Sequence record: NC_061440.1
Direction: 5' to 3' (one strand)
Length of the DNA: 64,000 nucleotides
The notes beneath the pieces were generated by a model that did no database searches, was not told where the DNA came from, and saw only the letters and a program-made list of their open reading frames with translations. Both the position numbers and the translations under genes were made by a program. Within the stretch, counting starts at the first letter, position 1. The number at the start of each line of letters is the position of its first letter. Of this stretch, positions 7,789 to 48,333 are shown piece after piece.

Positions 7789-7819
7789 CATACAACTACT
7801 GCCGAGGGGCACACAATGA
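7789..7819 (+). repeat. 31-bp leader repeat copy 1, containing the SD hairpin TGCC-GAGG-GGCA
   Basis: CATACAACTACTGCCGAGGGGCACACAATGA, identical to 8261-8291. Confidence 0.95.
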
Positions 7820-8190
7820 CTGCTATCAAATTTGCTTCTGTTTACGACATTCTTACCGAGATGGACGAATGCGCCAGAGATGTTGACTTCACCAAGACTC
7901 TTGGCTTCGACCCAATCAAAGTAGAAATTCTGCAATGTGGCTTGCAAGAAGACCTAGGCGTGTACGCTTGTCTACCGAACGCCACAAACATTCTGATTGC
8001 CGATTCTGATGACCTGTTCTCTGAGCACCTTAAAGGTGACGGCGAAATCACGGTCTGCCGCATCTTAACACCGAATGGTGAGATGTTCGATGAACCGGAA
8101 GTCGAAGTCAAACAGCTTGGCACGTTCAACGATTTTGATTCTGCGTATGCTGCGTGGTTAGCGGCGATTAACGAAGAAATCGACAAATAA
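7816..8190 (+). CDS. Acidic hypothetical protein (124 aa)
   Basis: First ORF after a promoter. Confidence 0.8.
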   Translation: MTAIKFASVYDILTEMDECARDVDFTKTLGFDPIKVEILQCGLQEDLGVYACLPNATNILIADSDDLFSEHLKGDGEITVCRILTPNGEMFDEPEVEVKQLGTFNDFDSAYAAWLAAINEEIDK

Positions 8191-8235
8191 TAGGTCAAAA
8201 GCGCCATAGCGATGTGGCGCTGTTTATCGTACTAT
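8183..8235 (+). promoter_or_regulatory. Promoter: box plus -10 (TACTAT)
   Basis: ACAAATAATAGGTCAAAA ... TACTAT; hairpin AGCGCCA..TGGCGCT in the spacer. Confidence 0.6.
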
Positions 8236-8260
8236 ATAGTCTCTAGCGCACTAACGCGCA

Positions 8261-8291
8261 CATACAACTACTGCCGAGGGGCACACAATGA
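8261..8291 (+). repeat. 31-bp leader repeat copy 2, containing an SD hairpin
   Basis: Identical to 7789-7819. Confidence 0.95.
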
Positions 8292-8989
8292 AAGCAGCAA
8301 ACTTTGACGTAGCATTCAACGCGAAAGACGAAGCAACCTTAAACGCATACGCAGCGCAAATCACCGAAGCTCTTAACGCGCTTGGTCGCCACGACCTGAA
8401 GATCAATATCATCTTCGGCACTGACCCGTTCGGCGAACGCCCTGATTTTGTGAATGACCCGAACGGTTTTCGCGTTACACAGAACGGCGAAGAAATTTTT
8501 GATATCTACACGCCGACTGAAAAACAAGTTGAAGGTGATGCGTCAGATGCTTTCATCTACGCTTCATGGGCCGACGGCGAAGCGCCGTGGGGTAAAGACG
8601 TGTCAGACAATGACATTGCAGAAATCGCCGAACACCTGAACGCTGCAATCCCACGCGTCGGCCGTGTGTTCAACGAATCTGATCGTCAGATGCTGCAAAA
8701 ACTCGCCGACACTTTGAACGCTCGTATGGACCGTACTGATGCGCGAGTGATCGTAACGAACGGCGCCGAAGACGATCTCATTGTTATGGTTGTTGGCTAC
8801 GACGAAGAAGAAGATGAAGTCAGTGACGAATACGGCTTCTTCTTGAGCCTGCCGTACACCGATGAAGACGGCACAGACGAGAAATACAGTCTGCACTACG
8901 CAGGCTACCCTGACGTGAACGACCACTCATATAGCTCTGCTGACCTCGACGAGATCTCAGAAGAAATCGAAGCGCTCGATCTGCTCTAG
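8288..8989 (+). CDS. Acidic hypothetical protein (233 aa)
   Basis: D/E-rich ORF after a promoter. Confidence 0.8.
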   Translation: MKAANFDVAFNAKDEATLNAYAAQITEALNALGRHDLKINIIFGTDPFGERPDFVNDPNGFRVTQNGEEIFDIYTPTEKQVEGDASDAFIYASWADGEAPWGKDVSDNDIAEIAEHLNAAIPRVGRVFNESDRQMLQKLADTLNARMDRTDARVIVTNGAEDDLIVMVVGYDEEEDEVSDEYGFFLSLPYTDEDGTDEKYSLHYAGYPDVNDHSYSSADLDEISEEIEALDLL

Positions 8990-9051
8990 TCACTAACTAA
9001 CTGCGGGGTTACGGCCCCGCTTACTTCACAATCTAATTGAGAGAACATACC

Positions 9052-9666
9052 ATGAACCTTATCAATACTTTCTTCGTCAAACGCTCTTACGCTTCTCTGG
9101 CCGCAGGTAACTTTGCAATCGACGCCAAGCACGTACAAGAGCTGGTTGAATGTGAGTGTGTGATCGTACACGTAGACACAGGCCACCGTAATGCGTTCGC
9201 GTTGAAGAACATCTCTATTACGCCTATCGACGAGCACAACGTTCGCATTACGTTCGACCCGCTGACCGACGCACACGCGATGCCTGTGACTGTCATGCCG
9301 AAAGATCTGAAAGGCAGCATTGAAGTATATGGCATGTATGTAGAAGACCTGAAAGACGTGCCACGTTTCAGCGTGTCGAATGACGCATCAGGCAACAATC
9401 CCAATCTGCTGTCGCTTGACCTCGAAAGCCGCCAGCGCTTCGTTCAATACTTCGGTGGCATGTGTACGTTGACTGACCTGTGCCTGACGCTACATGAGAA
9501 AGGCATTCACGTTGTCGATATCCACAACAACGTTAAGCAGCACGATCACGGCGTTGGCGTTTTCACTCAGCGTTATCGCACCGCATTCGAACTGAACAAA
9601 GACAACGGCATTAAGCGCCATAACGACGACTATCCTGTTCTGGCTCGCATGACCGTTTTAATGTAA
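9052..9666 (+). CDS. Hypothetical protein
   Basis: ORF; GAGAG before ATG 9052. Confidence 0.75.
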   Translation: MNLINTFFVKRSYASLAAGNFAIDAKHVQELVECECVIVHVDTGHRNAFALKNISITPIDEHNVRITFDPLTDAHAMPVTVMPKDLKGSIEVYGMYVEDLKDVPRFSVSNDASGNNPNLLSLDLESRQRFVQYFGGMCTLTDLCLTLHEKGIHVVDIHNNVKQHDHGVGVFTQRYRTAFELNKDNGIKRHNDDYPVLARMTVLM

Positions 9667-9714
9667 ACACACCTTGCCTCGCATTGAGCGGGGCTTTTCT
9701 ATTTGGAGAATGCT

Positions 9715-9975
9715 ATGTACCACTATACGCGTGAAGAACTGGAAGAAATGAACTGCATCGAACTGGACCAGCTTGCAAACGAGCGCGGTCTGCTGGAAGA
9801 TAAAGACGATGACGACGATCTGGACAATGACCTGCTCATTGGTATGATTCTTGACGACCAGAACGAACAGCAACTGGCAGACGAAGAAGCCGAAGATAAG
9901 CAACGTGCCGAAGACGACCGCGATCCACGTATCAATCGCCGTGACGGCCAAGACGGTTCAGACGACTATTGCTGA
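9715..9975 (+). CDS. Small acidic protein with a Rho-N/HeH-like N-terminus
   Basis: YTREELEEMNCIELDQLANERGL followed by an Asp run. Confidence 0.7.
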   Translation: MYHYTREELEEMNCIELDQLANERGLLEDKDDDDDLDNDLLIGMILDDQNEQQLADEEAEDKQRAEDDRDPRINRRDGQDGSDDYC

Positions 9976-10033
9976 TTAAGTAAACCAAGAGGCTGCCAAG
10001 CGCTGGTGGCCTCACTCACAAGAAGGAGCAATA

Positions 10034-10381
10034 ATGAAGCGCAAAGTAATATTGATAGACACGGCAGAGTTTCACAACCAACCCATCTCGTTCCCATCGA
10101 TCATTGATTTTGAAGGCATAGACACGGTGGTGTTTGTTGTGAAGTCAAATGGTGAGCACGGAGGCATTGATTATCTCGGTGCGTATTGTGCAACACAAAT
10201 GACAGTTGGCTATACGAAAGTGCCTATGGCGCAGACGTTGAACATCGACGAATATGGCGTTGTGCCTCTCGAAGATGATATGAAGGCCAAGCTACTTCAC
10301 ACCAACCATTACGTTGACGAAGTGCCTGAGCAACATCAAAGCATCTACAGCACGAAGACTGAAATCCTCTTCGCTGAGTAA
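10034..10381 (+). CDS. Hypothetical protein
   Basis: AAGGAG RBS. Confidence 0.75.
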   Translation: MKRKVILIDTAEFHNQPISFPSIIDFEGIDTVVFVVKSNGEHGGIDYLGAYCATQMTVGYTKVPMAQTLNIDEYGVVPLEDDMKAKLLHTNHYVDEVPEQHQSIYSTKTEILFAE

Positions 10382-10386
10382 CCGCA

Positions 10387-10414: not shown

Positions 10415-10458
10415 CATTTCTGTAAATACCTCGTACATTCACTGATGCGAGAAACACA

Positions 10459-11992: not shown

Positions 11993-12300
11993 CCAGATAC
12001 GTAGCCTGCATTGAGTTGTCTACCCGCGAAGGAAATATGAATCTGCCGATTCTACCTCGCTGTGAACTACAAGCATTTGTTCTTGATGGACACACGCAGA
12101 CTAAAGTGCCTATCAAACTTAATGCCACAAACGTCATCAATGTGGCGGGCAAAACGTGTGGTAGTCTGCAATGGTTTGATTGTGTGAATCTGCTCATATG
12201 GTCATCGTTTGATCCTGGCCGGTTTACGCTGTATATTGAACGTGCTTTCAAAACAGACGAGACTACAGACGACCAGCAATCTGCTGAACTCTGCAAATAA
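11980..12300 (+). CDS. Hypothetical protein
   Basis: ORF. Confidence 0.6.
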   Translation: MGNLTRYVACIELSTREGNMNLPILPRCELQAFVLDGHTQTKVPIKLNATNVINVAGKTCGSLQWFDCVNLLIWSSFDPGRFTLYIERAFKTDETTDDQQSAELCK

Positions 12301-12345
12301 TAGGCTAAAATAGCCATTCAGTCAGATACGCTCCTATGATATACT
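12293..12345 (+). promoter_or_regulatory. Promoter: GCA-N7-GG box plus extended -10
   Basis: GCAAATAATAGGCTAAAAT ... TGATATACT. Confidence 0.8.
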
Positions 12346-12374: not shown

Positions 12375-12388
12375 ACGCTGAGGAGCGT
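12375..12388 (+). promoter_or_regulatory. SD hairpin ACGCT-GAGG-AGCGT
   Basis: GAGG loop starts 12 nt before ATG 12392. Confidence 0.8.
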
Positions 12389-12841: not shown

Positions 12842-12843
12842 GC

Positions 12844-12881
12844 GATTTGTGAAGGGCATTTGCGAGTGCCCTTTGAAAATC
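12844..12881 (+). repeat. Repeated intergenic hairpin, copy 1
   Basis: GATTTGTGAAGGGCATTTGCGAGTGCCCTTTGAAAATC, near-identical to 13226-13265. Confidence 0.9.
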
Positions 12882-12889
12882 AAACACCA

Positions 12890-12905
12890 TAAGCTGAGGA
12901 GCTTA
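12890..12905 (+). promoter_or_regulatory. SD hairpin TAAGCT-GAGG-AGCTTA
   Basis: Part of the 24-bp repeat at 12887-12910 and 13689-13712. Confidence 0.85.
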
Positions 12906-12907
12906 AC

Positions 12908-13225
12908 ATGTCATCTTCTACCACTCTGACTTTCATCTTCCCAGAAATGACCACTCTGGAAGTATCTATCGGTAATGGCATTGTGCCTGCGTATCTGGGT
13001 CTCGCAGAAAATAGAGACATAACATTCAGCGACGTTAAGGCGCTGCGTCTGATGGGTGACTCAAACATCGTGGGTGCCATGTCACGCTTCGACCAGTCGA
13101 TGTTGAATCTGCTGATTGACCGTCACATCTCACATGAGAATGTTCGCTGCCGTGACGCCATAGACGCGGGCACCGAGCACTTCCCGTCTACTTGTCTTTA
13201 TCTGAAAGTAGCGCACCACCGCTAA
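12908..13225 (+). CDS. Hypothetical protein
   Basis: ORF. Confidence 0.75.
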   Translation: MSSSTTLTFIFPEMTTLEVSIGNGIVPAYLGLAENRDITFSDVKALRLMGDSNIVGAMSRFDQSMLNLLIDRHISHENVRCRDAIDAGTEHFPSTCLYLKVAHHR

Positions 13226-13265
13226 GATTTGTGAAGGGCATTCCAACGAGTGCCCTTTGAAAATC
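13226..13265 (+). repeat. Repeated intergenic hairpin, copy 2
   Basis: Same stem as 12844-12881 with a different loop. Confidence 0.9.
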
Positions 13266-13271
13266 ACAACC

Positions 13272-13287
13272 TGTTCTGAGGAGAACA
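13272..13287 (+). promoter_or_regulatory. SD hairpin TGTTCT-GAGG-AGAACA
   Basis: Before ATG 13291. Confidence 0.85.
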
Positions 13288-13290
13288 ACA

Positions 13291-13644
13291 ATGCCAGCAA
13301 CTGAATTGCCTATCGACGCCCGTGCTTTTGATGACCTGAGCAATAACAACTTCCTGCAAGTGTGCAACGCGATCTCTTTCTGCGTGTCTCGCGGTGATCT
13401 TGAGTTTCGTCATCATATCAAAGGTCGCCACATCGACGTTGCGTATCGCGCTGGTGGTAACAACGTTTTTGGTATCAGCACCGTTCGCATCCTGATGCCG
13501 TCCGAAGTTCTGCGTGAAGATATCGTAGAAGACTTCGAAATCATTCACGGCGATGCAATCATTCAGATTGAACGCCAGAAAGATTCGTTCTCGACGTTGC
13601 AACGTATCGCTGGTGCAGTCGAAGCATGTATGCCTAAGAAGTGA
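13291..13644 (+). CDS. Hypothetical protein
   Basis: ORF. Confidence 0.75.
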   Translation: MPATELPIDARAFDDLSNNNFLQVCNAISFCVSRGDLEFRHHIKGRHIDVAYRAGGNNVFGISTVRILMPSEVLREDIVEDFEIIHGDAIIQIERQKDSFSTLQRIAGAVEACMPKK

Positions 13645-13691
13645 TTGTTGCTCGCAGGTTCTTACGAGAGCCTGCTGTCAACATAACCCCA

Positions 13692-13707
13692 TAAGCTGAG
13701 GAGCTTA
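13692..13707 (+). promoter_or_regulatory. SD hairpin TAAGCT-GAGG-AGCTTA
   Basis: Before ATG 13710. Confidence 0.85.
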
Positions 13708-13709
13708 AC

Positions 13710-14117
13710 ATGAAACAATATCCACAACGCGGCCGTGTGTACACGCTGAAAGAAATCGAAAACGAACTGGAACTGCGTGACAGCCCGTTCCTGCGTTTCG
13801 TACCGCAGAAAGTTCGTCTGCTTGGTGAGAAAGAAGCTGGCATTCAGGTAATACAGCAATCGCACCTCGCTAACCTGTCTGACGTTGAAGGTTGGGCAGA
13901 CACCAAGTGGGCGTATGTACGCGAGACCGAAGAGTGGATTCCGCTTTTCCGTGCAGTTGACGACGCTGAGATTGAGGCTCTCTGTGTTATCGAGCCTGAC
14001 ACGTCTGAGTTTCGTTCGTGTGATGGTATGTTCATCTACCCGAAAGGTGCGGTGTGCAGGCAGTACACGCCTTATGACAAAAAGATTCACGGCGATCTGC
14101 TGGTGGCAGTAGAATAA
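13710..14117 (+). CDS. Hypothetical protein
   Basis: ORF. Confidence 0.75.
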   Translation: MKQYPQRGRVYTLKEIENELELRDSPFLRFVPQKVRLLGEKEAGIQVIQQSHLANLSDVEGWADTKWAYVRETEEWIPLFRAVDDAEIEALCVIEPDTSEFRSCDGMFIYPKGAVCRQYTPYDKKIHGDLLVAVE

Positions 14118-14124
14118 CAAAACA

Positions 14125-14155
14125 GGGATGCTCACCTTCGTGAGCATCCCATTTC
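14125..14155 (+). terminator. Probable terminator
   Basis: Perfect 11-bp stem GGGATGCTCAC-CTTC-GTGAGCATCCC followed by ATTTC. Confidence 0.7.
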
Positions 14156-14173
14156 TCATTTAAGGACAAATCT

Positions 14174-17732: not shown

Positions 17733-18134
17733 ATGGAAAAGACGTACATGACACATTGGGGTTCGCGTTACGTGCGAGCTCCGTCCGGTAAGTGGTATTC
17801 AGTTCATGGACGTGAAGGTACTTGGGTAACGAACCGCTATGGTACCTCATTCTATCGTAGCGGTTCGGAGGTATGGCGGGACATAACTATTGCGGATCGT
17901 GAGTCGCTGGAACGTGAGCTAATCAAACGTACCAACGAAGACTACACCGAGCAAAAGCGTAGGTATGACTACTGGGGAAGACTGGTGCGAGCGATTGCTC
18001 GTCAGTCGGAAGAGGAGAAGAATGAGCATACGGCAGAGCTTGCCGGGATGATTGAAGCGCTTAGACAGACTTTCTATGGACAGAAGGTACAGCAACTAAG
18101 CACAATTCTGGACGAAATAGCCGTTAAGAAGTAG
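17733..18134 (+). CDS. Hypothetical protein
   Basis: ORF. Confidence 0.7.
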   Translation: MEKTYMTHWGSRYVRAPSGKWYSVHGREGTWVTNRYGTSFYRSGSEVWRDITIADRESLERELIKRTNEDYTEQKRRYDYWGRLVRAIARQSEEEKNEHTAELAGMIEALRQTFYGQKVQQLSTILDEIAVKK

Positions 18135-18152
18135 ACTAATTCGTGATACAAT
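18100..18152 (+). promoter_or_regulatory. Promoter: GCA-N7-GG box plus extended -10
   Basis: GCACAATTCTGGACGAAAT ... TGATACAAT. Confidence 0.75.
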
Positions 18153-18201
18153 AAAGACGAACGCTAGACAGTCGTTTAGCTACTTACATGAGGATATGTA
18201 T

Positions 18202-18531: not shown

Positions 18532-18551
18532 CCTGAACTCCGCATGAGGAC

Positions 18552-20048
18552 ATGAATATGAAAAACATTAAACACACTTTCCGACTGACAGACCTTGTAC
18601 GCATCTCCAAAACCCTGCTTCCTGGTCTGAATAAATCCACCGCAGGCCTTGAGGCGATTGTTGTTGGTCGCACCACAGGTCTTATGTACCAGTTACACAT
18701 TAAAGGTCAAGGTGAAGTAGACAACTTTTATCCACAGGAAACATTGAGTCTGATTAGCCACAACAACGGCGAACTGCTTGACCAGTGGGAAGCGGGTGAC
18801 TATGGCCGTGACAAGAAAAAGAAACGCAAGATCCCAAAAGAACTGCGTAACTTCACGGCAATCCTGCCTGTGACCTGCAATGCCGATTGTTCGTTCTGTC
18901 CTGAGAAAGAGATGGAGCAGAAAGCCAACCAGAAAGAGTGGCAAGATGGTTTGATTGCCGAGATCAAACGCATGTACAAGAAAACGAAGTTCGACCACGT
19001 ATCAATCAGCGGCGGCGAACCGACGTTGCGTACAAAGTTCCTGTTCGAAACGATCGACCGTATTCAGAAAGAAACGCCGATCAAGAAAGTCGGTCTGACT
19101 TCTAACGGTCAGTTCCTTGAGAAACCAAACAGCACGTTCGACTTCTTAGACCGTAACACTGCGCCTGAGATGACCAGCAAGCTGTCGCATCTGAATATCA
19201 GTATGCACTCGTTCAACCGTGACCTTGCAAACAAGATCATGGGTGTGAACTACAAACAGACCCTGGAAGATTTAGTTCGCTTCCGCCGCCAGCTCGGCCG
19301 TGACGTTAGTTTCCACATTAACTTCGTGATCAATGACCAGACTGGTTCGATTACGGAAGAGTTCAAACGCGCCGCTAACTTCATGCGAGCCAACCCGTTC
19401 ATCGACGTTGTGTTCCGTGTTGACTACAACGATGTTGAACTGTCTAAGGCTCTGCGTGATTACGCTATGGAATATGAAGCGTATCTGACTAAGCTGCGTG
19501 ATAATGCGAAGCGCCCTAAGAAGGGAATCATTCGTGAGCCGAAAGCACCGCATATCGTTCAGAAGTTTGATCGCTTCTTCGGTGGCCAGAACCTTGAAGA
19601 CGTTGAGAGCGCTTGGACTACAGGTTGCCCGTCATGCTTCACTCATGCGTCGAACCCTGTCAATAACAGTCGTGCGTATTTGAAAGCGTCCTCGTATGAA
19701 CCGAACGACGACGAAGAAGAATACACTGAGCTGGTGTACCACATGGACGGCGCTCTGTATTGGGATTGGACTCGCAATGACCCAGTAGCACTGCCGCGCT
19801 CAAAACGTTTCGACTTCGAAATGAAAGAAGAAGACTCTGTTACTGAGGGTCGCTGTTCATTCGGACCTGCTGCACCTCATCATTGTTCGTATGATTCAAC
19901 TGGTACAACGGTCGCACCAAAAGCTGTGAAGAAACCTAAGAAGGTGGCACCTGCTAAGAAAGCGAAGAAAGTGGGTGGAAAAGTTTCGAGCGTTCCTGGT
20001 GCTGCACCTGGTGTTTGTGGCTACGGCAATAGTCGTTGTGGTTATTAA
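18552..20048 (+). CDS. Radical SAM protein with an N-terminal SH3-like domain and a Cys/Gly-rich tail
   Basis: CNADCSFC (18876-18899), SISGGEPT, LTSNG, LNISMHS. Confidence 0.9.
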   Translation: MNMKNIKHTFRLTDLVRISKTLLPGLNKSTAGLEAIVVGRTTGLMYQLHIKGQGEVDNFYPQETLSLISHNNGELLDQWEAGDYGRDKKKKRKIPKELRNFTAILPVTCNADCSFCPEKEMEQKANQKEWQDGLIAEIKRMYKKTKFDHVSISGGEPTLRTKFLFETIDRIQKETPIKKVGLTSNGQFLEKPNSTFDFLDRNTAPEMTSKLSHLNISMHSFNRDLANKIMGVNYKQTLEDLVRFRRQLGRDVSFHINFVINDQTGSITEEFKRAANFMRANPFIDVVFRVDYNDVELSKALRDYAMEYEAYLTKLRDNAKRPKKGIIREPKAPHIVQKFDRFFGGQNLEDVESAWTTGCPSCFTHASNPVNNSRAYLKASSYEPNDDEEEYTELVYHMDGALYWDWTRNDPVALPRSKRFDFEMKEEDSVTEGRCSFGPAAPHHCSYDSTGTTVAPKAVKKPKKVAPAKKAKKVGGKVSSVPGAAPGVCGYGNSRCGY

Positions 20049-26237: not shown

Positions 26238-27218
26238 ATGCGTTTTGGTTTCGCCTGCAAATTGCTTGACGCAAACAACAAACAGCCATTCACGAATAAG
26301 AGCCTTAGCTATAAACATTTCTCTGCGTTGTCTGCTGCTGACCAACATACGAAACTGTTGGAAGTTGTCACGCATAACCTGACTTCATTGCTTGATATGA
26401 TCAAGCACGTTGGTCGTCTGCGTACAGACCTGCGCATGTTTCGAATCACCAGTGAATTGTTGCCTCTGTACACTCACCCTAAAGTGTTTCACATGTACAT
26501 GCGCCATGACGTTGTTACTATCACCGAATCGCTACTCGCCTTGTGTGGTGAAGCGGCTAGACGTCATGACGTGCGATTATCATTTCATCCAGGTCAGTTC
26601 ACGGTACTCGCATCTGATCGACCAGATGTTGTCCAGAACTCAATAGCCGAACTTGAGTATCATGCGTACTGTGCCTATCACATGGGGTATGGTCGCCGCT
26701 TCCAAGACTTCAAGATCAACATTCACCTTAGCGGTAGACTTGGCGCTTCGGGATTCAGGCAAGCGCATTCGAAACTTTCTGATCGCTGCCGGAACATGTT
26801 GACCGTAGAGAACGACGAAATCACTTCGAGCCTCGAAGATTGTTTAGCGCTGGCAGACATATGCCCGATCGTCCTCGACATTCATCATCACTGGGTAATG
26901 ACTAACGAATACATACAACCGACCGACGACCGTGTTCAGCGTGTCATTGATTCTTGGCGAGGCGTTCGACCTGCTGCTCACTACTCTGTGTCAAAGCCTG
27001 AGTTTGTACCATCGCGTGGACTGCCCGACCAGAACAAGCTGTCCGCTAATCGAATGCAGTTACGTGCTCATGCTGATTATTACCACAACGAAGACGTAAA
27101 CGAGTGGGCCACTAGTTTCACTGATTTTGACCTGATGTGTGAGTCAAAAGCGAAAAATAGGGCTAGACTGAAACTGGCGTGTTTTAGCGTCAACTCTGCA
27201 AATAATTGGACAAAATGA
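26238..27218 (+). CDS. uvsE: UV damage endonuclease (UVDE/UvsE)
   Basis: RFGFAC, FRITSELLP..THP, RLSFHPGQF, LTVENDE, VLDIHHH, HYS, AHADY, LMCESKAK. Confidence 0.95.
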   Translation: MRFGFACKLLDANNKQPFTNKSLSYKHFSALSAADQHTKLLEVVTHNLTSLLDMIKHVGRLRTDLRMFRITSELLPLYTHPKVFHMYMRHDVVTITESLLALCGEAARRHDVRLSFHPGQFTVLASDRPDVVQNSIAELEYHAYCAYHMGYGRRFQDFKINIHLSGRLGASGFRQAHSKLSDRCRNMLTVENDEITSSLEDCLALADICPIVLDIHHHWVMTNEYIQPTDDRVQRVIDSWRGVRPAAHYSVSKPEFVPSRGLPDQNKLSANRMQLRAHADYYHNEDVNEWATSFTDFDLMCESKAKNRARLKLACFSVNSANNWTK

Positions 27219-27251
27219 GGCTTGTTTACGAAGGTAGCCCTGTGATACACT
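27198..27251 (+). promoter_or_regulatory. Promoter: GCA-N7-GG box plus extended -10
   Basis: GCAAATAATTGGACAAAAT..TTGTTT..TGATACACT. Confidence 0.75.
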
Positions 27252-29133: not shown

Positions 29134-29438
29134 TGAAAGGAAAGAAGTTAGACGTATTTTTGCAGCAACGCACGGCAATGAACAAAATCGCGTCCAGCCC
29201 GCAAGACTGGGAGACGTACAAAGAAATGCTGTTGAACATACGGCTTGCCGTTGCTGTTGACCCTCGACCTGATGCTGCTGTACGCCATCTGGCTCGTACA
29301 TGGCACGCCGAAAAGAAATATGCGCTCCCTGTCTGTCAGGCTACGCTTCTGAAACTGATGACGTTGAAGAAAGCAAACCAAACGCTTGAAGAAATGATCG
29401 CGCTTTACATTGACCTTGAGGAAGGACCGAAGAAATGA
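29133..29438 (+). CDS. Hypothetical protein
   Basis: GAGGA RBS; coupled. Confidence 0.7.
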   Translation: MKGKKLDVFLQQRTAMNKIASSPQDWETYKEMLLNIRLAVAVDPRPDAAVRHLARTWHAEKKYALPVCQATLLKLMTLKKANQTLEEMIALYIDLEEGPKK

Positions 29439-30628
29439 CCGAAGATGAAATGAACATCGACCACATTCGCAACGCCACGAAATCTATCTTCACTTCTGGC
29501 ACCGTTCAGCAACGTGACGCTCTGCGTTCAATCGCTAACACTGTGCTTGCTCCTAACGCCATGTTTGCGTGTGAAGTCGAGGCGCCTGATGTGGAAACCG
29601 CGTATCGTCTGCTGGAAGAAATCAAATTCACTGGCGACGGCACTAACATGCTTCCTGCCGATGAAGTGTATGCGCTCGATTCCATTCTGAGTAAGAAGTG
29701 GAAGAAAGACTTCTTTGAAGCAGTGCGCAATATCGCGCTGACAATGTACAGCACCGACCCTGTGTCTGCCGGTAAAGGCTTCTGGCCACGCAATCAAGGC
29801 GAGTTCAATCAGTTGATCACTCGCGCTTTCGTCTGGGTGTTGGCTCAAGAAGGTCTGAAAAATCTTTTGAAAGATTCGACTGTCGTTAGCCATACGCGTC
29901 TTGCTCAATTCATGATCGCAACGCAACTCGTAGGCAAAGACGAACCGAATCTGCGCCACTTCACAACGTATCGTCCATATCAGGACACAGGTGGTGTGAA
30001 CTGCGACAACATTCTGCCTGAGTCTTATCTCGAACAAATTCGCGCAGAACGCCGTGCAGGCCAGCCGCCAGAATATGAAGCTGCCAAGAACATGTCGTTC
30101 TCTGACCTGGCTGATTTGTGTGAGCGCTTGAACGTCATTGGCCCGGGTTCGACTAAACCCGTAACCTGTAATTGCCCTGTCGGTGAACTTTGCGAATGCG
30201 AAGAAGACGAATACCAGACGCGTGACGATTTTGACGAAGACCAGGAGGAGTTGCTGGAAGAGTTCTATCGTAAATTCGGCTTCCCTCACGATGAAGATGA
30301 AGACGAGCCCGAAGAAGAAATCTGGCGCGAAGGTATCTCGCTCATGGAAGTTGAAGTCGATCTGCCTACTGTGCGTCTGACTCTTCCAGAAGCCGGTGTC
30401 CGCAGAGACTCACGCATGAAAAAGCCGATGCAGAAATCTCGCCGTAACAAGATTCTGCTTACGGCTGAACAACAAATCTGGCACAAGGTTGATACTGACC
30501 CTGTGTCCGCAGATCGTCGCTTCGCTATCAGCCTCGTATCTCGTCATACGTGCGGTGTTAGTCGCCCTGTCGCCACGCAGCGTGAAGCACTGGCAATCGC
30601 CGCTGCTTTAGCTGAACTCTGCAAGTAA
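29435..30628 (+). CDS. Hypothetical protein (397 aa) with an acidic stretch and a C.C..G..C.C motif
   Basis: Long ORF. Confidence 0.8.
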   Translation: MTEDEMNIDHIRNATKSIFTSGTVQQRDALRSIANTVLAPNAMFACEVEAPDVETAYRLLEEIKFTGDGTNMLPADEVYALDSILSKKWKKDFFEAVRNIALTMYSTDPVSAGKGFWPRNQGEFNQLITRAFVWVLAQEGLKNLLKDSTVVSHTRLAQFMIATQLVGKDEPNLRHFTTYRPYQDTGGVNCDNILPESYLEQIRAERRAGQPPEYEAAKNMSFSDLADLCERLNVIGPGSTKPVTCNCPVGELCECEEDEYQTRDDFDEDQEELLEEFYRKFGFPHDEDEDEPEEEIWREGISLMEVEVDLPTVRLTLPEAGVRRDSRMKKPMQKSRRNKILLTAEQQIWHKVDTDPVSADRRFAISLVSRHTCGVSRPVATQREALAIAAALAELCK

Positions 30629-30673
30629 CTGGTCAGAATAGCGCTTCTTCGTGAGGCGCTTCTATGATACAAT
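30621..30673 (+). promoter_or_regulatory. Promoter: GCA-N7-GG box plus extended -10, with a hairpin in the spacer
   Basis: GCAAGTAACTGGTCAGAAT ... TGATACAAT. Confidence 0.75.
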
Positions 30674-34905: not shown

Positions 34906-35847
34906 ATGACTAAAATGATCAACATGCCGTTTGCTACTTCTTCTAGTCGTAGCTCATTCTTCTCGGCAAAAGTTCGTGAACTCGATCTCCAGAGCGTCTG
35001 GAGCTACGTTGTATCAAACAACAATCCACAATGGCAAGGCGACCCATTGCTGCACCACATGCACTATCATTCTACCGAGCACATGAAGCAAGTAACTGCT
35101 CTCGCCCTGTGGCTGCTGAATGAAGAAGCCGAACAACCATGGCAGTATGATCTGGGTGCGCTGCCTCTGGCTATCGCCTGTATGTTCCACGATATGCACC
35201 ACTCTCTTGGCCGCTTGAGCGATGCAGTCAACGTGCGTACTGCACAAGACGCTTTCAAACAATATGTGACCGTGTGTGAAGACCAACGCATTATCGACCA
35301 GCAGGAAATCATTCTCGAACTGATAGGCGTTACGGAATTCCCGTACATGAAGAATCGCCAGCCGAAGAATCTGGTTGAGCGTTGCATTCGTGATGCGGAT
35401 ATTCTCTACGGTATGCAGGACGATGCACTGGACGTTGTGATGTTCGCACTGCGCCGTGAAGTGAATCGTGCCGTGAACAAGCCAACACACTTCACGCCAG
35501 AACAGTGGGCAGTAGGTCGTGTTGACTTCCTCATGTCTGTTGAGATGTATACGCCTACAGCAAATGCGATCATGGACTGGCTGTTGGCAAAAGACAACGA
35601 TCACAATCATCAGTCTAAGATTGATAGCTGGATGCGGGATAACGTTATCTTCCGTGATACGTCAGCACACAAGCTCCAGGCCAATGATGTGTTGTTTATC
35701 GACACTGAGGCAGACAGTACGCCGAAGCGCCGTTTGATTGAACGTGTTGAGTCAGTACATCCGTACATCAACTTCTATTTCCACGACGGCGAAGCTATCT
35801 CGCTGCGTGACGGTGAGAGTTGTGTGGTCTGCGAAAGACGCAAATAA
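34906..35847 (+). CDS. HD-domain phosphohydrolase
   Basis: YHSTEH, ACMFHDMHH, IGVTEFP, IRDADIL. Confidence 0.8.
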   Translation: MTKMINMPFATSSSRSSFFSAKVRELDLQSVWSYVVSNNNPQWQGDPLLHHMHYHSTEHMKQVTALALWLLNEEAEQPWQYDLGALPLAIACMFHDMHHSLGRLSDAVNVRTAQDAFKQYVTVCEDQRIIDQQEIILELIGVTEFPYMKNRQPKNLVERCIRDADILYGMQDDALDVVMFALRREVNRAVNKPTHFTPEQWAVGRVDFLMSVEMYTPTANAIMDWLLAKDNDHNHQSKIDSWMRDNVIFRDTSAHKLQANDVLFIDTEADSTPKRRLIERVESVHPYINFYFHDGEAISLRDGESCVVCERRK

Positions 35848-35891
35848 TAGGCTGAAATAGGCGTATACGAACCACGTGCCTGTGATATAAT
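35840..35891 (+). promoter_or_regulatory. Promoter: GCA-N7-GG box plus extended -10
   Basis: GCAAATAATAGGCTGAAAT ... TGATATAAT. Confidence 0.8.
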
Positions 35892-39998: not shown

Positions 39999-40051
39999 GC
40001 ATAAAACTGGCTAAAATCGTGGTATCAATTTAAGCCCGACTGTGATATACT
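39999..40051 (+). promoter_or_regulatory. Promoter: GCA-N7-GG box plus extended -10
   Basis: GCATAAAACTGGCTAAAAT ... TGATATACT. Confidence 0.8.
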
Positions 40052-40083: not shown

Positions 40084-40097
40084 TGTCTGAGGAGACA
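40084..40097 (+). promoter_or_regulatory. SD hairpin TGTCT-GAGG-AGACA
   Basis: Before ATG 40102. Confidence 0.8.
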
Positions 40098-41572: not shown

Positions 41573-41586
41573 AACAGGAGGCTGTT
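41573..41586 (+). promoter_or_regulatory. SD hairpin AACAG-GAGG-CTGTT
   Basis: Before ATG 41589. Confidence 0.75.
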
Positions 41587-42129: not shown

Positions 42130-42182
42130 GCACAAAACTGGACAAAATCGTGGTTGTCTCAAATAGCTGCCTGAACTATACT
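42130..42182 (+). promoter_or_regulatory. Promoter: GCA-N7-GG box, -35 TTGTCT, -10 TATACT
   Basis: GCACAAAACTGGACAAAATCGTGGTTGT, shared almost exactly with 43143. Confidence 0.8.
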
Positions 42183-42188
42183 ATATAG

Positions 42189-42366
42189 ACAGCGAGACAA
42201 CTATCTCTCTGTATGCCTTTGTTACTGCTTGACCGTGTGTTTTTCGATTTTCCCGGACACACGGTCCTTTTTAAAGTGGACTTCGCTGAGGTTCCTTTAA
42301 AAAGGGTTCGATACCCTTTGAGCGCGTCGGGCTTTACGCGGTTTCCGCCTTACGTGCTCTCATGCT
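42189..42366 (+). ncRNA. Candidate sRNA or structured leader with a T-loop-like hairpin
   Basis: 10-bp stem GACCGTGTGT/ACACACGGTC plus T run; AAGGG-TTCGATA-CCCTT. Confidence 0.45.
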
Positions 42367-42386
42367 AAACCGCAAAGGAAATTGAA

Positions 42387-43142: not shown

Positions 43143-43196
43143 GCAGAAAACTGGACAAAATCGTGGTTGTTATCTGAAAGCAACCTATGCTATACT
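43143..43196 (+). promoter_or_regulatory. Promoter: GCA-N7-GG box plus extended -10
   Basis: GCAGAAAACTGGACAAAAT ... TGCTATACT. Confidence 0.8.
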
Positions 43197-43239: not shown

Positions 43240-43255
43240 AATACTGAGGAGTATT
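43240..43255 (+). promoter_or_regulatory. SD hairpin AATACT-GAGG-AGTATT
   Basis: Before ATG 43260. Confidence 0.85.
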
Positions 43256-43259
43256 AATC

Positions 43260-44870
43260 ATGGCACGTCTGGAAACTAACACTAACCTGGTTGGCAAAAC
43301 TATCGTCCTGCTGAACGGCACCAAATCTAAAATCGAAGATGCAATCGCGTCTGGTTATAAAGTGAAGGGCCAGTCAAAACGTATCGCCACCCGCTGCGTC
43401 ATCAAAGAAGGTTCTCACTTCCGCGAAATTGAGCGCATGAACATGAGCCAGCTGGAAGATACTGGCGAAGGTTACGTTAAACTGAAAGATGCTAAAGCGT
43501 CGGGTAAGAAAGCTGGCGCCAAAGAGAAAGAGCCGAAAGCGTCTGGCAAGAAGACTGGCAGCAAAGCTACTGCCAAAGAGAAAGAGCCGAAAGTTCGTCG
43601 TAAGTCTTCTAAAGAGCAAGGCGATGAGTATCAGGCTCTGGCGAAAGAAATCATCAAAGGCGGCAAACGTGCTGCGCCAGTTGAAATCGACGAGATCGAT
43701 GGCGACCTGACTGATACTGTTGCTCAACGTCTGGTGGACGTGCTGAACAATACCGAAATCGCCAAGCTGTGCGCTGACAACAAAACGCCGATCGCTAACG
43801 CTATCGAAGTTGCTTACGGCGCTGAGTTCGCACCTGAAACAAACGTCATGCAAATCACGCTGAGCCTGCAATACGCGAAGCCTGTTAAAACGCAGTCATC
43901 TTCTACGCTGGAAAACGCCGATGCAATCGCGGCCCGTGCTAAGAAAATGATCGCGCCTAAGCTGTCTAAGAAACTCGCTAAGGCGATTCGTGAAGCGTTC
44001 GGTCTGGAAGACGCCGCCGAGCTTGAAGCTGGTACCGTGTTGTTGTCTGATGGCGCTGAGTTCGTCTTCTGCGGCGAGAGCGCGAAGCACCTCGGCAAAG
44101 CGTTGCTGTATGTTGTAGAGACCGACAAGTTCAAATCTGTTGTAGGCTCTGCGCTGGCTGATTACGAAATTGGTCAAGAAGAGGAAGAGGAAGAGGAAGA
44201 AGAAGACTTCGAGGAAGAAGAGTCTGAGGAAGAAGAAGAGGAAGAGGAAGAAGAAGAGGAGGAAGAAGACGGCGAAGAAGAAGACGGCGAAGAAGAAGAC
44301 GGCGAGTCTGACGATACTGAATACCAGTATGTGGCCGTGACCAAAGATCATACCAACATGATCAACAAGAAAGTCACCGCTAAGTATCACGCCGCGCTGG
44401 CTGAACGCTTCAACACAACCGAAGAAGCTCTGGTCCCTGGCCTCGTGTTGACTGACGGGGAAACAACGTTCGCTTACCTGGGCTGTGATAGCAAAGGTGG
44501 TCTGCTGGTCATCGACGTTGAGGCTGAGGAGAACGAAGAAGACGTTCTGCTGTACAGCAAAGCCGATATCAAAGAACTGACCGACTTCAATCCTGTGCTG
44601 GATGACGTAGAAGGCGCTGCTGATGATGAAGGCGAAGAAGAAGACGGCGAAGAAGATCTGGACGAAGAAGACGGCGAAGAAGATCTGGACGAAGAAGACG
44701 GCGAAGAAGAAGAAGACGACGAAGACTTCGACTTCGATGATGTTCCTGCCGTTGACTTGAAAGATCTGTCCGAAGACGAACTGCGTGACCGTGTCGTTGA
44801 AGCCGGCCTGACCACCGTGCGTAAAGCTGACAAAATGAACGCGGCTCAACTGCGCAAGCTCCTGAAATAA
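43260..44870 (+). CDS. Multidomain protein with poly-Glu tracts and a C-terminal HeH-like module (536 aa)
   Basis: Long E/D runs, internal duplicated domain. Confidence 0.85.
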   Translation: MARLETNTNLVGKTIVLLNGTKSKIEDAIASGYKVKGQSKRIATRCVIKEGSHFREIERMNMSQLEDTGEGYVKLKDAKASGKKAGAKEKEPKASGKKTGSKATAKEKEPKVRRKSSKEQGDEYQALAKEIIKGGKRAAPVEIDEIDGDLTDTVAQRLVDVLNNTEIAKLCADNKTPIANAIEVAYGAEFAPETNVMQITLSLQYAKPVKTQSSSTLENADAIAARAKKMIAPKLSKKLAKAIREAFGLEDAAELEAGTVLLSDGAEFVFCGESAKHLGKALLYVVETDKFKSVVGSALADYEIGQEEEEEEEEEDFEEEESEEEEEEEEEEEEEEDGEEEDGEEEDGESDDTEYQYVAVTKDHTNMINKKVTAKYHAALAERFNTTEEALVPGLVLTDGETTFAYLGCDSKGGLLVIDVEAEENEEDVLLYSKADIKELTDFNPVLDDVEGAADDEGEEEDGEEDLDEEDGEEDLDEEDGEEEEDDEDFDFDDVPAVDLKDLSEDELRDRVVEAGLTTVRKADKMNAAQLRKLLK

Positions 44871-44935: not shown

Positions 44936-44949
44936 TGATTGAGGAATCA
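44936..44949 (+). promoter_or_regulatory. SD hairpin TGATT-GAGG-AATCA
   Basis: Before ATG 44954. Confidence 0.8.
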
Positions 44950-46204: not shown

Positions 46205-46584
46205 CAAATAACGAAATACTCCTGTCTGGTATGTTTGCTCAACTGTATGCGCGGCTGGTAACGGCCGCAATACTGAAAACGCATGTGTTCTATTCTGACT
46301 TGGCTCCGATAGTATTCGGCATCCAACTGTCCGAAGTGAGCACTGCGCAATATGACGCTCTGTGGAGTTTAGTAGCGACTTCCATGAGCGTCGATATCTC
46401 GCACGGAAGAGCACCGCTTGCTGCGCTCTATGTGTCGCGGTCATCTGATGATAAGAAGCCGAGTCGCAAGTTCTTCCGTGAGTATCACAAGATTACAGGC
46501 AAGCATCTGTCGGACAAAGAGTGGCAAGCACTCGTCCAGCAGGTGTACACTCAATACGAATCAAATCTCCGAGAGCCATCATGA
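46201..46584 (+). CDS. Hypothetical protein
   Basis: ATGA coupling. Confidence 0.7.
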   Translation: MTNNEILLSGMFAQLYARLVTAAILKTHVFYSDLAPIVFGIQLSEVSTAQYDALWSLVATSMSVDISHGRAPLAALYVSRSSDDKKPSRKFFREYHKITGKHLSDKEWQALVQQVYTQYESNLREPS

Positions 46585-47042
46585 AAAAAGCAAAGGTAGT
46601 AATTAGTCGTGGTGGATATCGACCGGCCTCCCACGAAGAAGCACAAAAGCTGGTGGTCGAAATGTTGTTAGCTTCAATCGGCGTTGACCCTACTATACTG
46701 AGCCAACAAATGCTGTTGAACGTTGCGAACTATAACTTCCTGACGTCAATCGCAGATACAGGCAAAGCAAATAACGCGAACCAGACAACTCTGCATAAAA
46801 CTGTAAAAGAACTTAATGCGTTTTGTAGATTGCACAAGATTCCGCTGGGCTTGCTAATTATGCCCCATACATCGGCTAGTGATTATGCTGGTGATGAGGT
46901 TGTAGCGATTCCATGGGAGCATGTGCTTAAAAACACATTAAGCCAGAACGCTGTCAATTCCCTGTTCCAAACAGTCGAAGCTGATGGCTATCCGCAGTTT
47001 GTGACTGACGCGAAAACAGTAGAGGAATACAATGTTTTATGA
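46581..47042 (+). CDS. Hypothetical protein
   Basis: ATGA coupling. Confidence 0.7.
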   Translation: MKKAKVVISRGGYRPASHEEAQKLVVEMLLASIGVDPTILSQQMLLNVANYNFLTSIADTGKANNANQTTLHKTVKELNAFCRLHKIPLGLLIMPHTSASDYAGDEVVAIPWEHVLKNTLSQNAVNSLFQTVEADGYPQFVTDAKTVEEYNVL

Positions 47043-48312
47043 TCACGTATTCAACCACGACGAAAAGCTAACGCTCTTGTCGGTGGCTGAGTCTAAATTC
47101 CTGGTGCGGCTCGACTGCCCTGATTACTTGAAGAAGTCGAAGCACTCAATTGAGATTCGCCACACTGTAACGAACCGCGGCGAGCAACGTCGAAGCGGTG
47201 TTGTGAATACAACCTTTGTTCCGCGTATTCATACTGCAACCGTTCAGCGTTTGGTGCGTGAAGTTCGTGACAATGCTAACGTTAGTTCTGCGAACAGCCT
47301 AGCCGCGTTGTTCGAACTTGGTCTGGGTGTGCCTAAGCAAAAGGACATTGCAACGTACCTGCGAGACTACTCGCGTGATAACGATAAGAAGGGCGTGGGC
47401 ATCAAATATATCCGCAAACTGATTAACGAGTATCATCGCAAGCACCGTCATAGTTTTGCAGGAAGTCGCTGGCTGATGCCTGCTGTGTACACCGCGAACT
47501 TGCTGAACATGCAGTCATTCATTCATCTGAAAGAAGACGGCTACAGCAAGAAGGTCAAAGTGCCTGACGGTCTGCCTGTTGTTCTGATCTACCAGAACAC
47601 GAACCACGCCGAAGCTGAGTTCTCTTTGTGTGACGCGTTTGCGATTAGCCCACTGGGTTATCCGATGCCGTTCGCCCAGATTGCTCTGCGTCCTGAGTTC
47701 AAGGCTGCACCGAAGACCTTCCGTTCTAAAGCGTTACGCGGCAAAGGTATGTATAGCATGGTGATGGGTATCATGCACTGGGAGAACGGCGATGCACTGT
47801 CGAACTTCCGTGAACTGATGGCTATCGACGACGAGCCGTATCTGACTCTGCTGGGCGATGAGCAGTACGCTGACCGTCGCAGCCCTGAATATCAGGCTCT
47901 GCTGGACAAACGTGCTGAGTTCCATGAGCAACGCCATGAGCATAACGAAGCGATTGCGAAGTATGGCAACACGACCCGTACGCTCAAGCCTAAGCAGGTG
48001 GAACGACTCGAACGTGCGGAAGCCTTCTTCAAAGAACGCAAAGCGTTTATGGACGAGTTTGATAAGTTCGAGAAGAAAGAGAACCATCACGCTGCGAAGA
48101 AATTCGCTGTGGCCCGAGCGCAGTTTGCTGCCGTTGATTGTGGTACCGTTATCGACCGTTCAACCTACATGGCGGTTGCTTCCGGCCTTGATACTGTAAA
48201 CAAGATTCTCACGAAGTGGGGATTTACGACGGTCGACACTGTTAATAGTAGTTTGAAGAAGTCTATCCTTACATACGACCCAACGACCGCTACTCGCGTC
48301 TGGTCTGTGTAA
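47032..48312 (+). CDS. Hypothetical protein (426 aa)
   Basis: GAGGA RBS. Confidence 0.8.
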   Translation: MFYDHVFNHDEKLTLLSVAESKFLVRLDCPDYLKKSKHSIEIRHTVTNRGEQRRSGVVNTTFVPRIHTATVQRLVREVRDNANVSSANSLAALFELGLGVPKQKDIATYLRDYSRDNDKKGVGIKYIRKLINEYHRKHRHSFAGSRWLMPAVYTANLLNMQSFIHLKEDGYSKKVKVPDGLPVVLIYQNTNHAEAEFSLCDAFAISPLGYPMPFAQIALRPEFKAAPKTFRSKALRGKGMYSMVMGIMHWENGDALSNFRELMAIDDEPYLTLLGDEQYADRRSPEYQALLDKRAEFHEQRHEHNEAIAKYGNTTRTLKPKQVERLERAEAFFKERKAFMDEFDKFEKKENHHAAKKFAVARAQFAAVDCGTVIDRSTYMAVASGLDTVNKILTKWGFTTVDTVNSSLKKSILTYDPTTATRVWSV

Positions 48313-48317
48313 ACCAC

Positions 48318-48333
48318 TTATCTGAGGAGATAA
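48318..48333 (+). promoter_or_regulatory. SD hairpin TTATCT-GAGG-AGATAA
   Basis: Before ATG 48337. Confidence 0.85.

Follow-up and report, generated by a model that had tools for sequence, protein, structure and literature searches.

The stretch of DNA analyzed here, hereafter the window, is 64,000 nucleotides (nt) long and corresponds to positions 201147-265146 of Erwinia phage pEa_SNUABM_22 (NC_061440.1) with 100% identity. This jumbo phage belongs to the genus Alexandravirus and has a genome of 265,146 bp, of which the window forms the final 64 kb. All of the annotated genes in the window (96/96) lie on the + strand and nearly all encode hypothetical proteins; the named genes include those for UvsX, topoisomerase II subunits, an RNA 2'-phosphotransferase and an endonuclease. 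At the starts of 15 genes the Shine-Dalgarno (SD) sequence is found within a small hairpin, mostly with GAGG as a tetraloop (Table 1). These SD hairpins are the subject of this analysis.

A blind scan of the window for GAGG tetraloops closed by perfect Watson-Crick stems of 4 bp or more returned 12 hairpins with stems of 4-6 bp on the + strand and none on the - strand. In 12/12 cases the loop starts 11-17 nt 5' of an annotated ATG. Across 300 dinucleotide-preserving shuffles of the window, the mean number of GAGG hairpins was 0.69 and the maximum 5; stems of at least 5 bp were observed nine times against an expectation of 0.18. The window contains 30 genes with a GAGG SD, and the flanks of this tetranucleotide pair over at least 4 bp in 12 of them, the stem lengths among the 30 being distributed bimodally (0-2 or 4-6). 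When the 5' flanks were permuted among these genes, a procedure that preserves any position-specific consensus (CT...AG), the mean number of paired genes was 0.56 and the maximum 6 in 20,000 trials. Chance or base composition as the cause is ruled out by the opposite strand, the dinucleotide shuffles and the flank permutation. The comparison with shuffled sequence had been set beforehand as the test for the 11 sites listed in a first-pass annotation of this DNA, and its outcome marks the hairpins as non-random and specific to gene starts; the 11 sites are all present, with the coordinates and stems originally given. That annotation also reported a variant at 18185. The site is real, but instead of a hexaloop the sequence is better read as a TACATG[AGGA]TATGTA tetraloop hairpin with a G·U closing pair, which is G-C in some relatives. 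This site and two others with GGAG or AGGA loops (5581 and 18543) were added to the 12 to give the total of 15. The hairpin at 29414, the one of the 12 GAGG sites missing from that annotation and located inside the upstream coding sequence, may be the one chance match that the shuffles predict. The observation of SD hairpins is thus confirmed, and it is strengthened by the orthologue data described below.

The gene-start hairpins are limited to genome positions 206.7-249.5 kb. As an internal control, 200 kb of the other 201 kb of the genome were scanned in four pieces, each separately; no gene-start hairpin was found there, and six other GAGG hairpins lie away from gene starts. The original description of the hairpins as phage-wide is therefore wrong.

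For the evolutionary comparison, orthologues of 13 hairpin genes were found via protein similarity, without using the hairpin itself as a criterion. The comparison set comprises 16 further genome sources, including eight other Alexandravirus genomes, metagenome contigs, Sasquatchvirus Y3, Snuvirus SNUABM_7, Rivsvirus SNUABM_5, Yoloswagvirus, Salmondvirus JA29 and the unclassified Yersinia phage fHe-Yen9-02. Searches of IMG/VR and metagenomes yielded few relatives, and the comparative data come mainly from GenBank phage records. The hairpins are kept by orthologues in at least seven genera. Within the genus the hairpin and its spacer are nearly invariant, with diverging leaders and with protein identities down to 39-77%. 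All distinct sequences of an alignment (37/37) maintain the four inner pairs, each of which shows 3-5 standard pair types, and pairs 3-6 covary. The covariation score of 0.735 compares with 0.203 in shuffles (0/500 reach 0.735) and with values ≤0.20 when the partners are slid, in a pooled set that includes paralogues chosen for being hairpins and in which the orthologues are the sole unbiased sample. Across the orthologues, compensatory double changes were seen at least five times and G·U intermediates five times, the latter including C-G to U·G in the gp254 hairpin and A-U to G·U in the gp265 hairpin. Disruptive single-pair changes are restricted to the outermost pair. In the gp324 orthologues alone, pairing is kept throughout at the five inner positions, and at two pairs both sides have changed. 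The covarying stems noticed at first among the genes of one phage are thus borne out in orthologues as well as in paralogues.

The loops are GAGG, AAGG, TAGG, TTGG, AGGA and GGAG, with loop positions 1-2 varying among GA, AA, TA and TT. Within the 37-sequence alignment, U-A, C-G and U·G serve as closing pairs; the gp321 hairpin is closed by G-C. The constant part consists of the loop GG followed mostly by AG, which is an SD core. From this comparative sequence evidence we conclude that selection acts on the hairpins as RNA structures at the SD, in agreement with the initial proposal: the compensatory changes and G·U intermediates extend across genera, and the inner pairs are never broken. The tolerance of G·U pairs, together with the strand specificity, favours pairing in RNA rather than in DNA. 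It is noted that the hairpins could in principle be palindromes at the DNA level, either protein-binding or recombination sites of shuffled cassettes, or else a by-product of the SD consensus with no RNA function. The cassettes do repeat and exchange between genes, and the frequent core CTGAGGAG is partly self-complementary (CT with AG). Against this, the T·G and G·T states, which pair solely as RNA on the + strand, are tolerated five times, the flank permutation that preserves CT...AG still gives 0.56 paired genes instead of 12, pairs 3-6 covary through their several standard pair types, and the position of the hairpin is fixed to the ATG and not to the cassette borders. We therefore regard a DNA-level origin as extremely unlikely.

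The histories of the individual hairpins are instructive as to how the stems vary. The gp251 hairpin is identical in SNUABM_35 and has a GGAGA pentaloop in Alexandra and SNUABM_2. Orthologues of gp253 keep the stem with either a GAGG or an AAGG loop, and the gp254 hairpin in SNUABM_17 is ATGCT[AAGG]GGCAT, with a U·G pair instead of C-G. The gp263 stem ACGCT/AGCGT becomes the compensatory AAGCT/AGCTT in SNUABM_17, 32 and 20, and an AAGG loop is present in SNUABM_7. For gp264 the stem is identical in 8/8 sampled relatives with proteins 49-91% identical, the loop being AAGG in SNUABM_20. In the gp265 hairpin of SNUABM_35 an AGGACA arm produces a U·G pair, and in SNUABM_17 the TAAGCT cassette has been swapped in at this gene. 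The gp266 hairpin has the stem ATGCT/AGCAT in Y3 (compensatory relative to AAGCT/AGCTT), a TAGGCT arm with a G·U pair in SNUABM_20 (AGGCT/AGCTT) and the TGTTCT cassette in SNUABM_7, and it is lost in Alexandra. The cassette at 18185 precedes the radical-SAM gene in relatives as TACATG[AGGA]C/TATGTA, with G-C alternating with G·U.

Further along the window, the gp318 stem TGTCT/AGACA is replaced by AGTCT/AGACT in Y3, a compensatory change, and by CTGTCT/AGACGG in Yoloswag, which contains a U·G pair (TGTCT/AGACG). The gp321 hairpin is invariant in eight other genomes (Alexandravirus, one metagenome contig and Y3), in which the proteins are 39-92% identical, and is lost in Yersinia phage fHe-Yen9-02. 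The stem of the gp324 orthologues is TAATACT/AGTATTA in Rivsvirus and Yoloswagvirus, TAATTCT/AGAATTA in fHe-Yen9-02, and TATTTCT[TAGG or TTGG]AGAAATA in Salmondvirus JA29 and metagenome contigs, at a protein identity of 36-41%. gp324 itself (43260-44870) is a conserved 536-amino-acid (aa) protein with long poly-Glu/Asp tracts, whose sole family match is PHROG 33433 (unknown function); it is found from Alexandravirus to Salmondvirus, always behind the longest SD hairpin. The gp325 hairpin is invariant in the eight other genomes carrying it (proteins 55-77% identical) and absent in four more distant phages. At gp329 the inner 5 bp, TATCT/AGATA, are retained in Alexandravirus, Y3, Rivsvirus and Yoloswagvirus, and variation is confined to the sixth pair. 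A regional census in the distant genera found further members, for example CGTCT[GAGG]AGACG twice each in Yoloswag and SNUABM_5. In the first 50 kb of phage T4, taken as an outgroup, only four minimal hairpins of 4 bp turned up, all of them with one or more G·U pairs, and no stem reached 5 bp, which rules out a general habit of T4-like phages.

Some of the hairpins are parts of larger cassettes that are repeated before unrelated genes, the cassette at 7800 being the same as that at 8272 and the cassette at 12890 the same as that at 13692. The genes gp264-gp266 form a tandem array of small genes (12842-14173), and in front of each gene stands a near-identical unit in which a terminator-like hairpin is followed by TTTGAAAATC, a C/A tract and the SD hairpin. 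In SNUABM_17 and SNUABM_7 the type of SD hairpin has been exchanged between neighbours of this array, and the swapped types indicate recombination between leader cassettes. Searches with PHROGs and Pfam assign the hairpin genes to families of unknown function only, except for the radical-SAM domain in gp276. The Pfam scan covered 159 proteins, namely those of all 96 window genes and 63 from two further + strand gene blocks.

The predicted stabilities of the 15 hairpins average -3.6 kcal/mol and lie within -0.8 to -5.5 kcal/mol, and their outer stem pairs are 28% G+C. Compared with random complementary arms around the same inner pairs, the hairpins are weaker (mean of -3.4 versus -4.8 kcal/mol, P = 0.003). 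G makes up 10% of the 14 nt 5' of the hairpins and 20% of control intergenic leaders (Fisher P = 0.004); A+C makes up 68% of the same 14 nt and 83% of the spacer between hairpin and ATG. The A/C-rich tracts remarked on before several of the hairpins are thereby substantiated. When the region from -45 to +20 relative to the start was folded, the predicted lowest-energy structure included 13/15 hairpins, so that the ribosome-binding site would lie within a local hairpin; the hairpin at 18543 is not in its predicted lowest-energy fold. A stable hairpin is usually found further upstream, separated by a predicted single-stranded linker of 1-24 nt, mostly 4-16 nt. Judged by sequence, the commonest core, CUGAGGAG, can pair with the 3' end of 16S rRNA over UGAGGAG, forming 7 bp of which one is G·U. 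The SD therefore covers the closing U, the loop and the first two bases of the 3' stem arm. Full pairing between SD and anti-SD would require that the top of such a stem be opened.

The weakness of the stems might suggest RNA thermometers or kinetic gates, in which stems at the SD slow early translation at low temperature. The stems are A·U-rich, their folding energies at 37 C are small as given above, and at 15-28 C, the usual temperatures of the host habitat, their stability would be higher. However, in fourU and ROSE thermometers the SD is paired within the stem, and here the core is mostly in the loop; moreover, the stems are perfect, with none of the mismatches or bulges that tune melting, and the hairpin is present in only a subset of the class of genes to which it belongs. 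A thermometer is accordingly very unlikely in our judgement.

That class is recognized by a composite promoter-like element made of (AACTCT)GCA-N7-GG, 24-34 nt and an extended -10 of the form TGnTAYAMT. Ten copies are found on the + strand of the window, spanning genome positions 208.9-260.6 kb, and none elsewhere in the genome. The stretch with hairpins falls almost entirely inside this span. A short 5' stem-loop lies 3' of each element. Five of the ten elements directly precede hairpin genes and five precede genes without a hairpin. The earlier estimate that about half of the hairpin genes come first after a GCA-N7-GG promoter was overstated, as 5/15 directly follow an element; the remaining hairpin genes follow G+C-rich hairpins located at the end of the preceding gene. 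Between 5597 and 48337 of the window, 28 genes have an intergenic leader measuring 40 nt or more, and 12 of these bear the hairpin. It should be mentioned that a generic sigma-70 scan and a terminator scan of the window did not clearly exceed shuffles, and for this reason the statements on promoters are predictions from the specific composite motif. The hairpins mark a subset of one transcription class, which the sigma-70-like extended -10 and a UP-like upstream element lead us to judge as probably early.

We propose, with about even confidence, that the hairpins are self-contained cis-acting translation-initiation modules of this one, probably early, class. The reading fits the restriction to leaders of a single class, the behaviour as cassettes, the selection for both pairing and weakness, and the conservation of nothing besides the SD and the stem. 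The module would have four parts. The first is usually a stable, G+C-rich upstream hairpin, either the 5' stem-loop after a promoter or the hairpin ending the previous gene, and the second would be a short, single-stranded, G-poor and C/A-rich tract. The third is the weak, A·U-rich hairpin of 4-7 bp, in which an NNGG tetraloop (mostly GAGG) and the first bases of the 3' stem arm (mostly AG) would constitute the SD; an A/C-rich spacer of 0-4 nt followed by the AUG completes the arrangement. The local hairpin could shield the G-rich SD from other pairings and show at least GG or AGG in a constant setting, whatever sequence lies alongside. The C/A tract could serve as a ribosome standby site or as a binding site for S1, and the stem might be weak enough for the bound 30S subunit to open it and complete the helix between UGAGGAG and the anti-SD. 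The outcome would be a portable start signal that still functions when open reading frames are shuffled behind the hairpin, and that may also protect the leader from RNases. Of all this, the data show the anatomy, the statistics, the confinement to one region, the conservation, the covariation and the weak stems; any effect on translation or stability is inferred. CA-rich single-stranded tails 5' of a structured ribosome-binding site have been reported to raise translation strongly via standby, with S1 as the suspected anchor (PMC5934652).

Several points weigh against the cis-acting module. A stem in which some SD bases, namely the AG of GGAG and the closing U, are paired should lower initiation, and the proposal does not explain what advantage a stem touching the SD would bring, nor why about half of the comparable genes do without one. 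The hairpin is lacking in 16 of the 28 genes with leaders of at least 40 nt and in five of the ten promoter-proximal genes; it is therefore not needed for expression of the class. Some members have been lost in distant genera, and the support from covariation is reduced by the selected paralogues in the pooled set. In addition, a near-invariant hairpin and spacer amid diverging leaders would be equally expected if a factor recognized them.

Such a factor is the subject of the principal alternative, in which the hairpins are operators for a trans-acting RNA-binding factor, be it a phage protein, a small RNA or host RsmA/CsrA, that jointly represses, activates or times translation of the subset. 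Models are available in T4 RegA, which acts on early mRNAs, and in CsrA, which acts on GGA loops. A shared loop carried by differing stems on about 15 mRNAs from a single promoter class is what a regulon operator usually looks like, and the near-invariance of hairpin and spacer within the genus fits as well. The GGA is located at the junction of loop and stem, and the cassette at 18185 (UACAUGAGGAUAUGUA) resembles the consensus RUACARGGAUGU obtained for CsrA by in-vitro selection (SELEX). Most of the early proteins have no known function, which leaves room for an unrecognised factor. On the other side, loop positions 1-2 and the closing pair vary freely, the conserved part is only what the SD needs, and no RegA, CsrA, S1, KH, cold-shock or Hfq domain was found by Pfam in the 159 proteins. 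A dedicated code read by a trans factor, as the first-pass annotation had it, is consequently not supported. Its other suggestions, a shield and a mark that sets phage mRNA apart from host mRNA, may hold, but a translation start acting in cis accounts for the data with no factor needed. We consider joint control through such operators possible but clearly the less probable explanation, and the same tentative standing is given to the broader notion that an unrecognised factor (a phage RNA-binding protein, nuclease or ribosome-associated protein, or a hijacked host protein) reads the SD shown by the hairpin on a subset of the early class. For CsrA in particular, the dimer's need for two sites in high-affinity binding is poorly served: a second GGA is present within -60..+40 in 2/15 hairpin genes, as compared with 30/81 other genes, and this rarity disfavours a dual-site CsrA model. 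With regard to a small RNA with an anti-SD loop, a scan for CCUC/CUCC loops gave 291 mostly coding-region matches, which is the background level, and no clear candidate.

A perfect 15-bp inverted repeat, CGAACCGCTATGGTA[CCTCATTC]TATCGTAGCGGTTCG, was observed on the + strand at 17830-17867, inside the coding sequence of gp274. Just downstream, the SD hairpins at 18185 and 18543 contain AUGAGG, to which the loop of the repeat, CCUCAU, is complementary. The repeat was not found in the eight relatives examined.

A nuclease in place of a binding factor gives a further alternative, in which the hairpins would be substrates of, or shields against, an SD endoribonuclease of the T4 RegB type that inactivates early mRNAs at a later switch. 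GGAG is present in 9/15 sites. In an artificial RegB substrate that is independent of S1, the loop contains GGA and the G after it is paired (Lebars et al., as described in PMC1702504), and the loop GG with a paired next G in the phage hairpins would fit this substrate if the weak U-A closing pair opens. The restriction to one, probably early, class parallels the targets of T4 RegB (PMC3014915), and the phage resembles T4 in genes for replication and recombination, namely those for UvsX, a two-part topoisomerase II and a sigma factor. However, no RegB-family match was obtained in the 159-protein Pfam set, with - strand genes and about 30 + strand proteins outside it, and GGAG is absent from 6/15 members. 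The natural site of RegB with S1 consists of 11 single-stranded nt, GGAGRAYARAA, and is protected from cleavage by secondary structure. No full match to this sequence is present in the window, where the 3' part of the would-be site is a stem arm and several sites have C at the disallowed position 5; the sites at 5597 and 13291 match 10/11 positions. An endoribonuclease of this type is in our view improbable.

No match was found at the family gathering score of Rfam in the 64-kb window, and a translation start with the SD in a hairpin loop appears undescribed in the literature searched, in keeping with the initial remark that no named system matched. Partial likenesses exist. In the MS2 coat/CA-tail reporters (Sterk, Romilly and Wagner 2018, PMC5934652), as in the phage, a hairpin at the ribosome-binding site adjoins a C/A-rich tract, and such single-stranded tracts let the 30S subunit wait and capture the site upon opening (PMC5934652). 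The stable MS2 hairpin sequesters the start region, whereas the phage stems are much weaker, with the AUG free and the SD core in the loop; the predicted phage linkers (1-24 nt, mostly 4-16) compare with an optimum of 16-18 nt reported for CA tails (PMC5934652), and the phage design recurs on about 15 genes.

Phage T4 also has cis hairpins at translation starts that are conserved among relatives and set the efficiency of initiation (PMC3014915). An enhancing hairpin lies between the SD and the AUG of genes 25 and 38, and the SD or AUG of e, soc, 49 and I-TevI is sequestered in early transcripts (PMC3014915). None of these structures places the SD in the loop, and each belongs to a single gene, unlike the promoter-class-linked family described here. 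The PeSL cassettes of T4-type phages are intergenic repeats in plastic early regions, where a stem-loop and an early promoter of the sigma-70 type are joined to an SD and a start codon, and have been linked to gene shuffling (Arbiol 2010, PMC2839356; Comeau 2014, PMC4122927). They resemble the present cassettes in being repeated and swapped between genes, and the ten predicted promoter-like elements here are all in this region. However, the PeSL stem-loop is a terminator upstream of the promoter, whereas the phage hairpin is downstream of the promoter, carries the SD and has no U-run. Covariation at the SD is not described for PeSL, and the phage promoter is a different composite (GCA-N7-GG, 24-34 nt, extended -10).

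The RegB/S1 sites (Durand 2006, PMC1702504) are alike in having GGAG in the SD of early-class mRNAs, the class being probably early here. They differ in that the natural site is single-stranded and protected by structure, in contrast to a hairpin that lacks GGAG in six of the 15 cases in a phage with no RegB match. The hairpins bound by CsrA/RsmA share a GGA-containing purine loop on a short stem at the SD, but the A of the GGA sits in the closing pair in most phage members, a second GGA is rare and Pfam detected no phage CsrA. By analogy, the ribosome standby model would be the nearest mechanistic frame and the PeSL cassette the nearest evolutionary one.

Pairing that touches the SD is usually regarded as avoided by selection. 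The retention of this hairpin across at least seven genera, with compensatory changes, therefore implies that the fold itself is useful. The 15 small variants offer a natural test bed for how the 30S subunit uses a loop SD, a standby tract and a weak stem together, and they constitute a conserved cis-regulatory RNA motif for one transcription class in the poorly known jumbo phages of Erwinia, Dickeya and Yersinia. They also flag gp324, gp325, gp329 and the small-gene arrays as being under special expression control. If the cis-acting module works regardless of the open reading frame behind it, gene-expression design would gain a start signal that is both compact and portable. If a regulon factor existed instead, it would favour these mRNAs on the host's ribosomes just after infection or shut all of them off later, and would represent a new translational regulon, that is, a phage-specific layer of translational control marked by the shape of the RNA and not by its sequence.

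Table 1. SD hairpins, predicted promoter-like elements and a repeated motif in the window (window coordinates; loops in brackets)
Feature	Position	Strand	Gene (start)	Sequence	Energy (kcal/mol)	Remarks
SD hairpin	5581-5596	+	gp251 (5597)	GTTATT[GGAG]AATAAC	-2.3	6 bp; abuts ATG; in lowest-energy fold
SD hairpin	7800-7811	+	gp253 (7816)	TGCC[GAGG]GGCA	-5.1	loop 12 nt before ATG; leader CATACAACTAC; 3' of composite promoter-like element with extended -10 at 7754
SD hairpin	8272-8283	+	gp254 (8288)	TGCC[GAGG]GGCA		~30-nt cassette identical to that at 7800
SD hairpin	12375-12388	+	gp263 (12392)	ACGCT[GAGG]AGCGT	-5.5	leader ATTACAACTA; 3' of promoter-like element at 12337
SD hairpin	12890-12905	+	gp264 (12908)	TAAGCT[GAGG]AGCTTA	-5.2	leader AAAATCAAACACCA
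SD hairpin	13272-13287	+	gp265 (13291)	TGTTCT[GAGG]AGAACA	-5.1	
SD hairpin	13692-13707	+	gp266 (13710)	TAAGCT[GAGG]AGCTTA		24-nt cassette identical to that at 12890
SD hairpin	18185-18200	+	gp275 (18202)	TACATG[AGGA]TATGTA	-1.4	G·U closing pair; 3' of promoter-like element at 18144
SD hairpin, weak	18543-18554	+	gp276, radical-SAM protein (18558)	CATG[AGGA]CATG	-0.8	weakest member
SD hairpin, doubtful member	29414-29425	+	gp300 (29435)	CCTT[GAGG]AAGG	-2.2	4 bp; loop 17 nt before ATG
SD hairpin	40084-40097	+	gp318 (40102)	TGTCT[GAGG]AGACA	-4.2	3' of promoter-like element at 40043
SD hairpin	41573-41586	+	gp321 (41589)	AACAG[GAGG]CTGTT	-3.4	leader CAAAGCAAACAACA
SD hairpin	43240-43255	+	gp324 (43260, 536 aa)	AATACT[GAGG]AGTATT	-3.0	leader CAAATCAAACAACA; 3' of promoter-like element at 43188
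SD hairpin	44936-44949	+	gp325 (44954)	TGATT[GAGG]AATCA	-1.9	leader TCTGACAACTAAGC
SD hairpin	48318-48333	+	gp329 (48337, 1001 aa)	TTATCT[GAGG]AGATAA	-3.3	
Composite promoter-like element	7710-7762	+				predicted
Composite promoter-like element	12293-12345	+				predicted
Composite promoter-like element	18100-18152	+				predicted
Composite promoter-like element	27198-27251	+				predicted
Composite promoter-like element	30621-30673	+				predicted
Composite promoter-like element	35840-35891	+				predicted
Composite promoter-like element	39999-40051	+				predicted
Composite promoter-like element	43143-43196	+				predicted
Composite promoter-like element	55658-55710	+				predicted
Composite promoter-like element	59486-59537	+				predicted
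Repeated motif	3593	+		TCTGTAAA		
Repeated motif	10419	+		TCTGTAAA		
Repeated motif	28537	+		TCTGTAAA		
Repeated motif	51390	+		TCTGTAAA		
Repeated motif	51690	+		TCTGTAAA		
Repeated motif	52221	+		TCTGTAAA		
Repeated motif	52899	+		TCTGTAAA		
Repeated motif	52955	+		TCTGTAAA		
Repeated motif	59469	+		TCTGTAAA		

Apart from the composite promoter-like element, the motif TCTGTAAA occurs in nine + strand copies, compared with 2.25 expected, and forms an intergenic cluster at 51.4-53.0 kb of the window. It may represent a second promoter class or a regulatory site. Three long non-coding gaps, at 42130-42386 (257 nt), 53808-54025 (218 nt) and 59465-59804 (340 nt), each contain several hairpins, show no Rfam match, and may encode small RNAs or hold regulatory regions. 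Among the proteins of the early region of the window and of genome positions 1-44 kb, Pfam matches were obtained to Acb1 (anti-CBASS), the Tpt1 RNA 2'-phosphotransferase, the 2'-5' RNA ligase superfamily, DUF4326, the UvdE endonuclease, the DksA/TraR zinc finger and radical-SAM (gp276, 18558-20048). Taken together, these families suggest functions in RNA repair and anti-defence among the early proteins.

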